Source of the DNA: Guillardia theta CCMP2712
Taxonomy: Eukaryota; Protista; Cryptophyta
Direction of reading: 5' to 3'
NCBI RefSeq assembly: GCF_000315625.1
Contig: NW_005434628.1
Location: 103,003-162,772 of the forward strand
DNA: 59,770 nucleotides
Part shown: one piece after another, positions 7,941-12,759 of the stretch
Layout: each line of letters starts with the position of its first letter
Numbering within the stretch: position 1 is the first letter of the stretch
Notes under the pieces: model-generated
Databases searched by the model: none
What the model was told of the DNA's origin: nothing
Seen by the model: only the letters and a program-made list of their open reading frames with translations
Translations under genes and position numbers: made by a program

Positions 7941-9454
7941 CGAGCGAGTGAGGAACAGAGAGAGGGGAGCAAGACTTCAGGTGTTTTCCTGATTCAGCTG
8001 CTCCCCCAGGTATCTTGAACGGCATCGACACGGAGGAGTGGGACCCGGAGACCAGCAAGGCTCTTCCTGCTCAATTCAGCAAGAGCGACTTATCAGGCAA
8101 GGCGATCTGCAAGGAGAAGCTGCAGGAGGCTCTCGGCCTGCAGAAGAACCCCAACGCTCCCATCATCGCCTTCATTGGACGTCTAGGTGAGAACAGAGGA
8201 GGAGGAGGGAGGGAGGGGAGTCGGGAGAAGGGAAGAGGAGGAAGGAAGAGCAGGAGCAGGAAAGCATAGAGTCTAAGCCTAGACTAGCATGCTTCCTCCG
8301 CCGTCTCGTTCTCCTTCCCTTTAGTTTTAATCTCTCCTCTTGTTTCATCCCCGCATTGGTCCTCTCATGCTCCCTCCTCCCTCCTCCCTCCTCCCTCCTC
8401 CCTCCTCCCTCCTCCCTCCTCCCTCCTCCCTCCTCCCTCCTCCCTCCTCCCTCCTCCCTCCTCCCTCCTCCCTCCTCCTTCCGTCCTCCCCCTCTCTCTC
8501 TCCTCTTCCTCCTCCCTCGTCTCCTCCTCCTCTCCCCTCCTCTCCCTCCTCGCTCTGACCGCACCCCCAGCTCCGCAGAAGGGCATCGACGTGCTGCAAG
8601 AGTGCTTTCACTGGCTCATGGGAGGAGACGACCAGGGAGTCCTCGGAGACGCGCAACTCATCATGATGGGGAATGGGCAGGCGGAGTACGCAAACTTCAT
8701 GAGGGCGGCGGAAGGACAGTACAAGGGAAGGATCTGTGGGTACGTGGGTTTCAGCTCGGAGATGGAGCAGAGGATTATCGCTGGAGCTGACATCCTCATC
8801 ATGCCCTCCCGGTATGAGCCCTGCGGCCTCCCGCAGATGTACGCGCAGCGGTACGGGACGATACCCGTGGTGCATGCTACAGGAGGGCTCAAAGATTCGG
8901 TTCAGCAGTTCGAGTGGCGGGAAGGAGGAGAGACGGTGGGGACGGGGTGGAAGTTTGGGAACTGCGACGCCAATGGCCTGAAGGTAAAGCAGTGGAGGAG
9001 AGGGAAGGAGAGGAGAAGGAGGAAGAGGGAGGGAGGGAGAAGAGGGAGAAGGAGGGAGAGGTTGGAGGAGGAGGGAGGGAAGGAGGAGGGGGAGGGAGGG
9101 AGGGAGGAGGGAGGGGGAGGAGGAGGAGGATTAGGAGGAGGAGGAGGAGGGAGATGGATCTCATTCAAGGTGGCAGTGGGGTCTTTGGAATGCTCTAGAG
9201 ATCTACAAGAAGAAGCCGGAGGTCTGGGACAACCTGAGAAAACGATGCATGGAGCAAGACTTCAGCTGGATCGCAAGCGCCAAGAAGTACATCCAGGTAC
9301 CCACCCACCCACCCTCACTCCCTCACTGAATGCCTGCCTTTCCTCCTCCTCCTCTCCCCCCATCTTCGCTGGTAAAGGCAACTGACTTTACCTGCAGCTC
9401 ATGGAGTGGGCCACCATGGACCCTCCCAAGCACGAGCCCTGGCCCTTCCGGTGA
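5263..9454 (+). CDS. Starch/glycogen synthase, glycosyltransferase family 5 (SSI-like), multi-exon, with N-terminal targeting leader
   Basis: IVIISSELTPYSKSGGLADVA (KxGGL), HRVMTVAPAY, DNLFRFALFSWAALE, ADRVVTVSPSY, NGIDTEEWDP, PIIAFIGRL, QKGID, ADILIMPSRYEPCGLPQMYAQRYGTIPVVHATGGLKDSV. C-terminus MEWATMDPP..WPFR stop at 9452-9454. One N-gap inside. Confidence 0.95.
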
Positions 9455-9549: not shown

Positions 9550-9718
9550 CCTAGGGGAGAGGTTGATGCCTTTCGGAAGAAGAGACTATGCCATGACTAT
9601 TTAGAATTTCTTGAAGAGATTTCACAAAGCCAAACATTCAACGACATTACTAGCAGATTTCTTACGTTCCCTCCTTATTAGCCCAGTCATTATCCTTGAC
9701 TCCCCCTCCCCCTCTTCG

Positions 9719-12209
9719 CTATCCACTCGCCGCCTGCCTCTGCAACATCCCAAACTGAACTTGGTTCGCAAGAGCTTCTGAGTTGGACTTGCCCTGACTC
9801 TCCTTGTACTCCGGCAGTCGCTTCCCCTGCCGCAAACATTCCTCGCACGCGATCAAGTACTGTTGCTGAGGCCCGATGATGCTCCCAGGCCTCACGATCC
9901 TTAGCCATGCCATCGTATCCCTTGCGGTCCAGCCAAAGTTGAACATGATCCACAGAGCGATCATCGTCCCGGTCCTCCCGAGCCCTGCCAGGCAGTGAAC
10001 GGCAACCACACCAGGTTCATGGTCGCAGATCGCCAGGAAGCGCTCGACGAGCTTGAAGGAGGGAGTCGTGCAGTCCTCGAAGAAAAGGTCGTAGTGTCGT
10101 ATCCCTGCCTCCTCGAACCCTCGCGCGTCGTAAGTGTCTTGCTCGTTAAGGCGCACGACGGCCGAGACTTTGAGCTTCTTGAAGACCATGACGTACTCCC
10201 CCGGCGTCCGCATGTTCTCGTCGCTGTCGTTGGGCCCTCTGAAGGCAATCAGCTTCGGGCAGATCTGGTGAACGTCGAAGTTGGCGGGGTTGTCGAGCCA
10301 GAGGTACCGGTTGACGTCGAAGCTGCGGTAGTCGAACCAGCCCACCTGCAGCGCGCACTTGAGCCCCCTAAAGCAGTCGAGGAGCGACAGGCCGAAGTCA
10401 GGCTGCTCGTACGTGGCGTCACGGAAGGGCATGAAGAGTTTGTATCCCATGTCGGAGAAGGCAGCGCTCGCCTCCTCTGGCGACCAGCCCTGCGTGATGA
10501 CCAGGAACGCTCCGAGCAAGAAAGCAGCGTTAGTTCGCAGAGCTGCGTCCTTCTCTGCGTAGTAGACCAGAGTGCGATTGTAGAGCCGTTGATCCGACAG
10601 CTTCTGATGAATGTAAGAGCAAAACTGGTGAACTTCGGACAGGTTGACAGGCCCGAAGTCTGAGCAGAAGGGCAGGTAGGATTCATGGTGGGTGCTCGAG
10701 AAGAAGAAGATGTGGCGATTGTTCATGATCTCAAGCTTTGTTTGCCCTTCATCTCGGTGAATCACAAACCCCAGCCGCTTCGGGATCAGCTCCATGATCC
10801 TCCCATACTCAATCTGTGATTCGTCGCAGACTGTTGGACTGGACGGAGGGGTGCACGCAGCGCTGTGCTCTGAGTCGAGACCTTGCGAGTCATAGTACTT
10901 CTTCCTTACCTCCATGATCGAGTCCAACCCAGCTCTTCGCTTGTTCGCTGTCTTGGAGAGCATCTTCAGCACGTCTCGATTGCCAGCAAGGTCCTCCTTG
11001 ACAACCGACAGGAAGTCGAACGCACTCAGCTCCCAGCAGGTGCAATGAACATCCGCTACCACATCGCACGTTCGCAGCTGGTTGTCATCAGTTCCACTTG
11101 GAGAGTCATCAAGGTGTATGAATTTGCGGCATGTTGCGACAAACGCCATCTCACCAAAGAAATCGCCATCCTTCAACCGACTGACAGTCTGGCCGTCGGC
11201 CATCACAAGAGCCTGACCAGTTTCGATGAAGAACAAGGTTGTCCCGACCTCCCCCTTCTTGACGATCATCTTTCCAGCTTCATACTGCCTCAGGCTCATC
11301 CGAGAGAAGCATGCCATCCTGCTTTTATCCACCATGATGTCGAAAAGTTCGCAGTTGGAACCGCAACTCGCGTAAGTCCTGCAGAAGTCCTCATTCGCCT
11401 CTGTCTCACTCCCTGAGCGATCTTCTGTTTCTAGCTGCTTGTTCATCTCAGCAAAGTCCAGCAGTGGACCCTTCTTCCCTCTCATGAATGCTCCCTTGGG
11501 TGAAACCAAACTTTGAACCGTCGAGCTTCCAATCGTTATGTCCCTTCCCGAGTTCGATTTCTTCAACGCCGTCAGAGCGTTGTCGTCCTCGTGTCCTCGA
11601 CGAGGGGAGTTCTTGCTCCCCTCGCCCACAACGGTGTCAATGGATTTTGTATCGGCATTTCGAACCTGAGTGCTGTTTGCAAGGATTCTGCAGGAAGCAA
11701 TCAAGAGAAACTTGAGGGAGTTCACAACAAGTACCTTAGCACCGCCTGCAAGCTGACATCATCGTCAGAAAAGCAGGTCAGGAAATGTTTCACGCTCAAT
11801 TCAAGGCATCGGCAGGCTTCTGATGCGATAATAGAGGCAGTCCGCTTCCTGTTCAGTACATTCGCAGGGAAGTGCTTGGTTTGGTTTTTGAAAGTGGCCA
11901 CCGTAGCAATAAACGACCCTTCCCCAAAGAAATCACCAGCATATAGATCGTTGACGTGCAATCCTTTCTTGATGACCCGCGCTGCTCCTACATCCAAGAA
12001 ATACTGCAAGACGTGTCAGACGAACCACCAACAGCAGCTCGTTGCCTTACCATGGACGTCCCAATTGTTCCCTCCTCCAAAATCGTCTCCCCTGACTCGA
12101 AAGTTCTCAAAACCATCCCGGAGATAGCCACGCTCCTGTTGCTCGGACCCATCGCCTCGAAAAGTTGGCAGCTTGCCATGCTCTTCTTGAAATCACAGTC
12201 CATGCTCAT
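9719..12209 (-). CDS. Cdc14-family dual-specificity phosphatase with two N-terminal cyclic-nucleotide-binding domains (three exons)
   Basis: cNMP domain 1: FESGETILEEGTIGTSM|YFLDVG..GDFFGE..RTASIIA. cNMP domain 2: YEAGKMIVKKGEVGTTLFFIETG..GDFFGE..RTCDVVA. Cdc14 N-domain: YLPFCSDFGPVNL, RTNAAFLLGAFLV, PFRDA. Catalytic domain: KLIAFRGP, VVRLN, DLFFEDCTTP, AVHCLAGLGRTGT, WLRIVRPGSIIGPQQQYL. Confidence 0.93.
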
Positions 12210-12547
12210 GTTGAAAACCACGGCAACGGATTTCTGAGCCCGAGATTTGTAGGTTGTACTGGACAGCTCAGCAAAGACACCAAGTCATCTAAGAGGAGGT
12301 CAGTAGGGGAACACTTCAACTGTTCTCTTTGTTCCATAACCAGCAACAACAAGCTTGTCACGCTCTAAAATGCCTATCATAATTCGAGGGGAGCATGCAG
12401 ACACCAGCGATTAACACCGCCATTTTCTCACTCTCACATTCCCCCCTCCCACAGCATCTCTCACGCATGCAGCTTAACCACTTCGACACGTCTTCGTCCA
12501 ATCTTCTCTCTCCGGTTCTCAATACTATACATGCCACGATGTCTTTC

Positions 12548-12670
12548 TGCCCTGCCCTGCCCTGCCCTGCCCTGCCCTGCCCTGCCCTGCCCTGCCCTGC
12601 CCTGCCCTGCCCTGCCCTGCCCTGCCCTGCCCTGCCATGCCATGCCCTGCCCTGCCCTGCCCTGCCCTGC
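12548..12670. repeat. (CCCTG)n microsatellite
   Basis: Tandem CCCTG with two CCATG variants. Confidence 0.95.
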
Positions 12671-12759
12671 TGTCACCATTTTCACTGCGCCATTCTCACA
12701 TTCTGTTCCATCGCACGACCTCCTTTCATTTCTTCATGGAGCAAACCATGTTGGTTTAT

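Follow-up and report, generated by a model that had tools for sequence, protein, structure and literature searches.

A Guillardia theta Cdc14-type phosphatase with two N-terminal cyclic-nucleotide-binding domains and enlarged phosphate-binding cassettes

A three-exon gene on the minus strand of a 59,770-nt stretch of the Guillardia theta (G. theta) genome, hereafter the window, occupies positions 12209..9719 and encodes a product of 798 aa. In this protein, two cyclic-nucleotide-binding (CNB) domains, CNB-A and CNB-B, stand in front of a complete Cdc14 phosphatase. The gene is fused and it is expressed. We regard it as moderately probable that this nuclear gene, one of four paralogs, encodes a proline-directed phosphatase of the Cdc14 type that is switched by a nucleotide through its two PKG/PKA-like CNB domains. 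Control by a cyclic nucleotide is, we infer, the most economical reading, since Gly-Glu and Arg are kept in both sensors and the phosphatase retains the Cdc14 fold with the catalytic residues Cys, Arg and Asp.

The sensor and catalytic domains are each known individually. In the open-access literature searched, no description was found of a CNB-Cdc14 architecture or of a cassette insert comparable to the one reported here.

One expressed gene for sensors and phosphatase

The structure of the gene was determined by comparing the window with assembled transcripts and with a natural G. theta transcriptome protein of 798 aa (UniRef A0A7S4L934_GUITH, here P0079). Its parts are as follows.

12051..12209, minus strand: exon 1, 53 aa beginning MSMDCDF, equal to residues 1-53 of P0079; it contributes the start codon and the N-terminal third of the CNB-A domain
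12004..12050, minus strand: intron 1, 47 nt, GT..AG, phase 0; it interrupts CNB-A, and the joint 12003/12051 is present in transcript contigs
11735..12003, minus strand: exon 2, 89 aa plus 2 nt; the remaining CNB-A beta barrel with its enlarged phosphate-binding cassette
11688..11734, minus strand: intron 2, 47 nt, GT..AG, phase 2; it divides the codon of Arg143, and the joint 11687/11735 is present in transcript contigs
9719..11687, minus strand: exon 3, stop codon included; the CNB-A C-helix, the linker, CNB-B and the entire Cdc14 in a single open frame
9592..9718, minus strand: 3' untranslated region (UTR), its poly(A) site marked by the read pile of run X22 and by T-runs

Read directly from the sequence, the reading frames are continuous over both exon junctions. 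Exon 3 is the 3' portion of a 668-codon open reading frame (ORF). CNB-B and Cdc14 both lie within this one open exon, so their fusion is independent of any splicing call.

The splicing itself was verified in transcripts. Two contigs from different studies (X1 and X2) span 9592..12290 or beyond and omit precisely 11688-11734 and 12004-12050. The skipped stretches have CT..AC ends on the plus strand and hence GT..AG ends when read along the gene. Another contig, from run X15 (a library of unrecorded type), runs unbroken across both introns. P0079 is identical to exon 3 at 655/655 residues, and its first 145 residues correspond to exons 1 and 2, the split Arg and the beginning of exon 3. A Hanusia phi transcript has the same exon junctions. 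The gene coordinates and the two introns that the sequence-only reading of this DNA had proposed are thus borne out by the spliced contigs and by the identity with P0079. All full-length analyses were performed on this natural protein, which is identical to the spliced product.

In the raw RNA reads of run X22, a pile of 3' tags covers about 9600-10000, and loose T-runs precede 9591/9592. Together they place the poly(A) site at about 9592, so that the 3' UTR measures about 127 nt. At 12545-12680, a short way upstream of the coding sequence, is a (GGGCAG)n microsatellite of about 135 bp; since the spliced contig X1 extends into it, it appears to belong to the 5' UTR.

Pfam recovers the same domain set. 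On the window, cNMP_binding was found in exon 3 (52.9 bits) together with DSPn (PF14671, 125.7 bits, 2.3e-36) and DSPc (PF00782, 49.6 bits). Exon 2 yielded a cNMP_binding (PF00027) fragment covering the C-terminal two thirds of the domain (26.4 bits), and the full-length Hanusia ortholog yielded cNMP_binding in two stretches, DSPn and DSPc. The earlier claim of two cNMP domains in frame with a complete Cdc14 therefore stands, given these matches and the shared ORF. The NCBI model for this gene (P0080, 335 aa) begins at Met464, so that it contains the phosphatase only and hides the sensor domains.

Sensor and phosphatase halves

An AlphaFold2 model of P0079 was built from an 83-sequence alignment, with a predicted local distance difference test (pLDDT) of 84.2 and a predicted template modelling score (pTM) of 0.70. 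From the N-terminus, CNB-A is joined to CNB-B by a disordered linker of about 70 aa, and a long helix leads from CNB-B to Cdc14 with its DSPn and DSPc parts. The domains are placed as follows.

Residues about 10-165 of the P0079 model, minus strand: CNB-A
11836..11931, minus strand: CNB-A cassette, FFGE (78-81), 25 residues, then R107-T-A; helix 81-91 in the model, pLDDT 83-91
11411..11617, minus strand (residues 167-235): linker, Ser/Pro/Lys-rich and disordered, pLDDT below 50 over 167-220, with SPRR (170) and SPKG (205)
10880..11407, minus strand (residues 237-412): CNB-B, Pfam 52.9 bits, ending in a 36-residue C-helix (376-411)
11066..11161, minus strand: CNB-B cassette, FFGE (319-322), 25 residues, then R348-T-C; helix 322-332 in the model
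10346..10807, minus strand (residues 437-590): Cdc14 A-domain (DSPn, PF14671), genome match C46:113357-113794
9821..10318, minus strand (residues 600-765): Cdc14 B-domain (DSPc), by Pfam and by alignment with Cdc14B and the yeast enzyme; general acid D681
9968..9997, minus strand: catalytic P-loop HCLAGLGRTG (C708, R714), from the translation
Residues 776-797 of the P0079 model, minus strand: C-terminal helix

The CNB fold, an eight-stranded beta barrel with flanking helices, is canonical, as indicated by its closest structural matches. Modelled in isolation, CNB-B reached a pLDDT of 89.6 and a pTM of 0.84. The best match is the cGMP-bound CNB-B of PKG II (Z 17.1, root-mean-square deviation (rmsd) 2.5 A, 143/177 residues aligned), and it is tied with further ligand-binding CNBs: yeast Bcy1, PfPKG CNB-D, MloK1, PKA RI-alpha CNB-B, SpIH and SthK all lie within one Z unit of it. 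Overall, CNB-B matches the CNBs of PKG, PKA-R, HCN and MloK1 at Z 16-17. PKG and PKA-R are the nearest relatives of the sensors, with Plasmodium PKG closest in sequence and PKG II CNB-B closest in structure.

The phosphate-binding cassette departs from this canonical picture. The spacing between Glu and Arg was 8 residues in all ordinary CNBs retrieved, including a seven-CNB protein, stramenopile PKGs and others, and neither CNB-A nor CNB-B has a cassette of this canonical length (about 8 residues). When the family profile was compared with solved CNBs, a 14-position gap was always opened at the cassette, and the insert was absent from all solved CNBs examined. In the model, the cassette helix is extended to 11-12 residues and is followed by a variable loop of lower, mostly fair confidence. 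The insert amounts to 14 to 24 extra residues and is common to all aligned full-length fused proteins. On the aligned sequences, the enlarged cassette is a trait of the CNB-Cdc14 family.

The residues that would contact a nucleotide were then compared. The ribose-binding Gly-Glu (G80-E81 and G321-E322) and the phosphate-binding Arg (R107 and R348) are present in both CNBs. Across 30 aligned CNB segments, G65, G86 and L128 are invariant, and G56, G82, F85, E87, R113 and F133 are nearly invariant (alignment positions). CNB-A keeps both Glu and Arg in all aligned full-length members. Within the cassette, the family keeps FGE-x-x-F-x-A-T/C and the Arg, while the intervening loop varies freely in sequence and length. 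Conservation of Gly, Glu and Arg in spite of this free variation is the pattern that continued ligand binding would predict.

Two details of the cassette had been given more meaning by the sequence-only reading than they can bear. The first is the match between the two cassettes. Exactly 25 residues do separate Glu from Arg in both domains; however, inserts in the family range from 22 to 32 residues (22, 24, 26, 31 and 32 in paralogs, 23 in other members). The equality of 25 and 25 is therefore accidental, and it was ruled out as a designed feature. The second is a preference for cGMP, read from the Thr that follows the cassette Arg. In the family this position is occupied by T, A, V, Y, F or L, so it says nothing reliable about cGMP versus cAMP, and the proposed preference was dropped as unsupported. 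HCN channels also have Arg-Thr and prefer cAMP. The further suggestions of that reading, a bulkier nucleotide as ligand and control of the cell cycle or of flagella, are guesses.

In the Cdc14 half, the fold is that of Cdc14 and the catalytic Cys, Arg and Asp are all in place. Human Cdc14B is the best solved relative (E 1.6e-73), and the matches are not due to chance. Foldseek comparison with 9rib and 1ohe gave E values of about 5e-27, a TMt of 0.87 and rmsd of 2.1-2.9 A, and mouse Cdc14A was matched at an rmsd of 2.1 A. Identity across the structural alignment is 37-39% with animal Cdc14A/B and about 30% with yeast Cdc14. C708, R714 and D681 align with C283, R289 and D253 of the yeast enzyme and with the loop of human Cdc14B. 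Y569 aligns with yeast Tyr132, which caps the +1 proline pocket (PMC7374715). On these alignments, proline-directed specificity is likely.

The protein resembles human CDC14A/B and the yeast enzyme in its tandem DSPn and DSPc domains, its HCxAGLGRTG loop with Cys and Arg, its general acid Asp and its Tyr cap. It differs from them in its two N-terminal CNBs, in having Leu rather than Glu as the first residue of the +3 groove, and in having Leu rather than Lys in the catalytic loop. No sensor domain is known in the Cdc14 enzymes of animals and yeast, which are controlled by sequestration (Net1) and by phosphorylation.

The loop difference had been noted from the sequence as HCLAGLGRTG against the usual HCKAGLGRTG, the latter being the loop of human Cdc14B. 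The sequence of the loop is correct, but the Leu is not a special mark of the fusion. Among 14 strong G. theta Cdc14 loci, the P-loop begins with HCL in 7, HCK in 2, HCF in 2, HCS in 2 and HCR in 1, and most of the HCL paralogs are without sensor domains. As the commonest loop among these loci, HCL was ruled out as a functional mark of the fused proteins.

A family of fused proteins

The gene is not alone in its architecture: it belongs to a small family with four G. theta paralogs and with orthologs in other cryptophytes and in marine metagenomes. Family hidden Markov models (HMMs) were run on 9.5 kb around each of the 13 other G. theta Cdc14 loci and on the window. Four loci have two CNBs followed by Cdc14 on the same strand, and in 4/4 of them intron 1 interrupts CNB-A at the same profile position (44/45). 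The three further paralogs, and the insert lengths read in them and in other members, are listed below.

C6, about 888 kb (P0003 / L022): two CNBs and Cdc14 by family HMMs; insert length 32 in CNB-A and 22 in CNB-B
C46, about 255 kb (L023): its NCBI model GUITHDRAFT_73143 (P0011, identical in the Cdc14 columns) is reduced to the Cdc14 part; insert length 24 in CNB-A, CNB-B not read
C214, about 34 kb (L030): two CNBs and Cdc14, with the divergent P-loop HCSNGGRRSAT; insert length 31 in CNB-A and 26 in CNB-B
P0004 and P0005: insert length 23 in CNB-B; CNB-A is not in these models

The P-loop of L030 retains CX5R and has lost GLGRTG, and this copy sits on a long branch of the tree. It may be a copy with changed specificity or weak activity.

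The database proteins closest to the window gene are cryptophyte. The same architecture is present in Hanusia phi (84-85% identity), in two Teleaulax amphioxeia proteins and in several clusters from marine metagenomes and transcriptomes; the metagenome ORFs that carry it are intron-free. A quick maximum-likelihood tree of the Cdc14 domain was calculated from 90 rows. All fused rows (24/24) fall inside one clade of 33 with a Shimodaira-Hasegawa-like approximate likelihood ratio test (SH-aLRT) value of 99, and at least one row of this clade that was scored as unfused comes from a fused gene whose model is truncated. The tree is compatible with a single origin of the CNB-Cdc14 fusion, though the label needs five changes as scored.

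These sequences can already be found in UniProt with automatically assigned names, among them "protein-tyrosine-phosphatase", "cell division cycle 14" and "CRP-like cAMP-binding protein". The reference annotation trims at least two of the four G. theta CNB-Cdc14 genes to their phosphatase part (P0080 and GUITHDRAFT_73143). Because of these truncated models, the architecture is invisible in the protein set of the genome. An expansion of Cdc14 in G. theta has been noted earlier as "16 database entries" (PMC7374715); surveys counting 16 homologs could not see the sensors, again because the reference models are truncated.

Several other sequences touch on this family. An environmental protein of 500 aa (P0065) is a PAS and Cdc14 fusion (PAS_9 28 bits, DSPn, DSPc), which suggests that in protists Cdc14 has been coupled to further sensors of small molecules or light. 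A second environmental protein (P0178, 1227 aa) has four cNMP_binding stretches by Pfam, with Cdc14 at 440-752 and sensors apparently flanking it on both sides. In the P0014 cluster (P0143, P0144; loci L032-L034), NCBI files two short pieces of a 1050-aa CNB-Cdc14 protein under a "Promethearchaeia archaeon" metagenome-assembled genome. The full gene is found on metagenome contigs of roughly 4.3 kb, a TARA scaffold among them, and it nests within the fused clade. Misbinned eukaryotic DNA is a more likely source of these pieces than an Asgard Cdc14.

Proposed nucleotide switching and its alternatives

Under the preferred reading, that of a nucleotide-switched Cdc14, the switch would operate as follows. 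Class III cyclase domains were matched at least 81 times in the G. theta genome and phosphodiesterases (PDEs) 27 times, from which the messengers cAMP and cGMP are plausibly abundant. Many of the cyclase domains occur in pairs, within ORFs of about 900-1300 codons. Once produced by these cyclases, cAMP or cGMP would bind one or both CNBs. By analogy with PKG, PKA-R and Epac, binding would shift the cassette, the hinge and the C-helix. The sensor module would then sit differently against the phosphatase and switch its activity, with release of autoinhibition as the likelier direction. The enlarged cassette may also double as a contact surface for the catalytic domain, in the way that the PKA RI-alpha cassette meets the kinase subunit; in the PKA holoenzyme, the CNB-A cassette belongs to the interface with the catalytic subunit.

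Known systems offer partial models for such a switch. In PKG and PKA-R, two CNBs likewise stand N-terminal to, or act on, a catalytic domain directed at phosphoproteins, and autoinhibition relieved by nucleotide is the obvious analogy. The G. theta protein differs from them in having a phosphatase rather than a kinase as its output and 25 rather than 8 residues in its cassette. In Epac, a CNB sterically autoinhibits the attached catalytic region and cAMP releases it, which is again an analogy, and Epac2 is among the structural matches; its catalytic domain is different and its cassette is canonical. CNB-PP2C fusions, with or without a kinase domain, have been described in plants, oomycetes and other protists (PMC2246266; PMC10925823). 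They are the sole combination of a CNB with a protein phosphatase that we found described. They differ in having a metal-dependent PPM fold instead of a Cys-based dual-specificity Cdc14, they usually include a kinase domain too, and an enlarged cassette has not been reported in them.

A number of results weigh against nucleotide switching as described. The contiguous, packed tandem CNB of the PKA-R/PKG type was not found in the model, and superposition on tandem CNB structures gave rmsd values of 13-24 A. In PKG and PKA-R the CNBs are packed through a shared B/C helix, whereas in the G. theta protein about 70 disordered residues part CNB-A from CNB-B; the known tandem-CNB mechanism is therefore not simply transferable. 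The Glu of CNB-B is lost in P0130, P0007 and P0010 (FGV) and its Arg in P0008, P0009 and P0014, from which it follows that CNB-B, at least, is able to drift to a ligand-free role. The insert is located at the nucleotide phosphate site and could occlude or reshape the pocket. On the phosphatase side, L605, D608 and D614 align with yeast E168, E171 and D177, which we take to be the acidic triad holding the +3 basic residue of pSer-Pro-x-Lys/Arg substrates of Cdc14. Two of the three acidic residues are kept, and the preference for a +3 basic residue may be weaker.

Contact between the halves is also weakly predicted. A three-chain prediction (CNB-A, CNB-B and Cdc14) scored 0.36 against 0.00 for the best control, with at least 35% of contacts in agreement between runs and partner pLDDT of at least 84, a weak pass. 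In calibration, 51 of 78 solved complexes reached the mark, as did 2 of 108 mismatched pairs, and a pass at or below 0.60 is wrong more often than it is right, except where the guess was likely beforehand. With so low a score, intramolecular docking of the sensors on Cdc14 is not used here as evidence. As a candidate pseudo-substrate, the linker motif SPRR (170) fits Ser-Pro-x-Arg, yet it is kept only in Hanusia and is unaligned in the paralogs; it was set aside as an idea with low odds.

The first alternative is that the CNBs are ligand-free CNB-homology modules, as in KCNH channels and PDZ-GEF, serving as a fixed regulatory, dimerising or targeting scaffold with the cassette filling or covering its own pocket. 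We consider this unlikely, though several results fit it. The cassette insert of 14-24 residues occurs in every aligned fused member and in no solved ligand-binding CNB examined, CNB-B has lost Glu or Arg in several relatives, and the CNB-homology domains of KCNH are good structural matches (Z 13 to 15). However, the retention of FGE and Arg in both domains, and in the CNB-A of relatives, beside a variable loop is hard to explain without a ligand offering phosphate or ribose, and the top structural matches are nucleotide-bound domains.

A second alternative would keep a ligand but change it: the CNBs might bind a nucleoside, like trypanosome PKA, or a pyrimidine cyclic nucleotide or a cyclic dinucleotide, with the remodelled cassette giving a new specificity. 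We judge this improbable. The cassette geometry is indeed altered, and a cUMP-binding CNB (8jsk) is among the structural matches (Z 14.6). CNB domains elsewhere have been retuned to nucleosides (PMC10959531). Against this explanation, the Arg and Glu for cyclic phosphate and ribose are retained, trypanosome PKA presumably does without that Arg, judging from the title of 6h4g (E311A, T318R, V319A mutant), the genome holds a large set of cAMP/cGMP cyclases and PDEs, and direct evidence exists for none of these other ligands.

Finally, the notion that a gene-model or assembly artefact joined a CNB gene to a neighbouring Cdc14 gene, which the Cdc14-only NCBI model P0080 might encourage, has practically no chance of being right and was refuted by the single uninterrupted ORF of CNB-B and Cdc14, by the spliced contigs of independent runs that span all three exons, by the identity with P0079, and by the same architecture at three more G. 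theta loci, in transcripts of Hanusia and Teleaulax and in metagenome ORFs that contain no introns.

Returning to the nucleotide-switched Cdc14, a broader proposal can be made tentatively, at somewhat less than even chance. CNB-Cdc14 proteins may be an unrecognised class of eukaryotic effector, in which cAMP or cGMP directly switches a phosphatase of CDK sites with no kinase between, and in which the enlarged cassette couples ligand occupancy to docking on the catalytic domain. The direct cyclic-nucleotide effectors of eukaryotes are, to our knowledge, few: PKA, PKG, Epac, CNG/HCN channels, Popdc, SLC9C1 and a few others. If true, a nucleotide-gated Cdc14 would add a Cys-based phosphatase to them. 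Such a protein would moreover be the first Cdc14 to carry its own small-molecule sensor, and would provide a natural, ligand-switchable form in which to study this phosphatase. In cryptophytes, a single protein would then lead from a second messenger, such as one made by light- or chemo-sensory cyclases, to the removal of phosphate from proline-directed sites of the cell cycle or the flagellar apparatus. With its enlarged cassette, the family offers a natural experiment on the part of the CNB fold that is conserved most.

A GT1 glycosyltransferase (Glycos_transf_1, E 5.8e-08) has its C-terminal exon at 8591-9385 on the plus strand, convergent with the 3' end of the CNB-Cdc14 gene. By its motifs this exon is similar to starch/glycogen synthases, and its ORF continues into low-complexity sequence rich in Glu, Gly and Arg.

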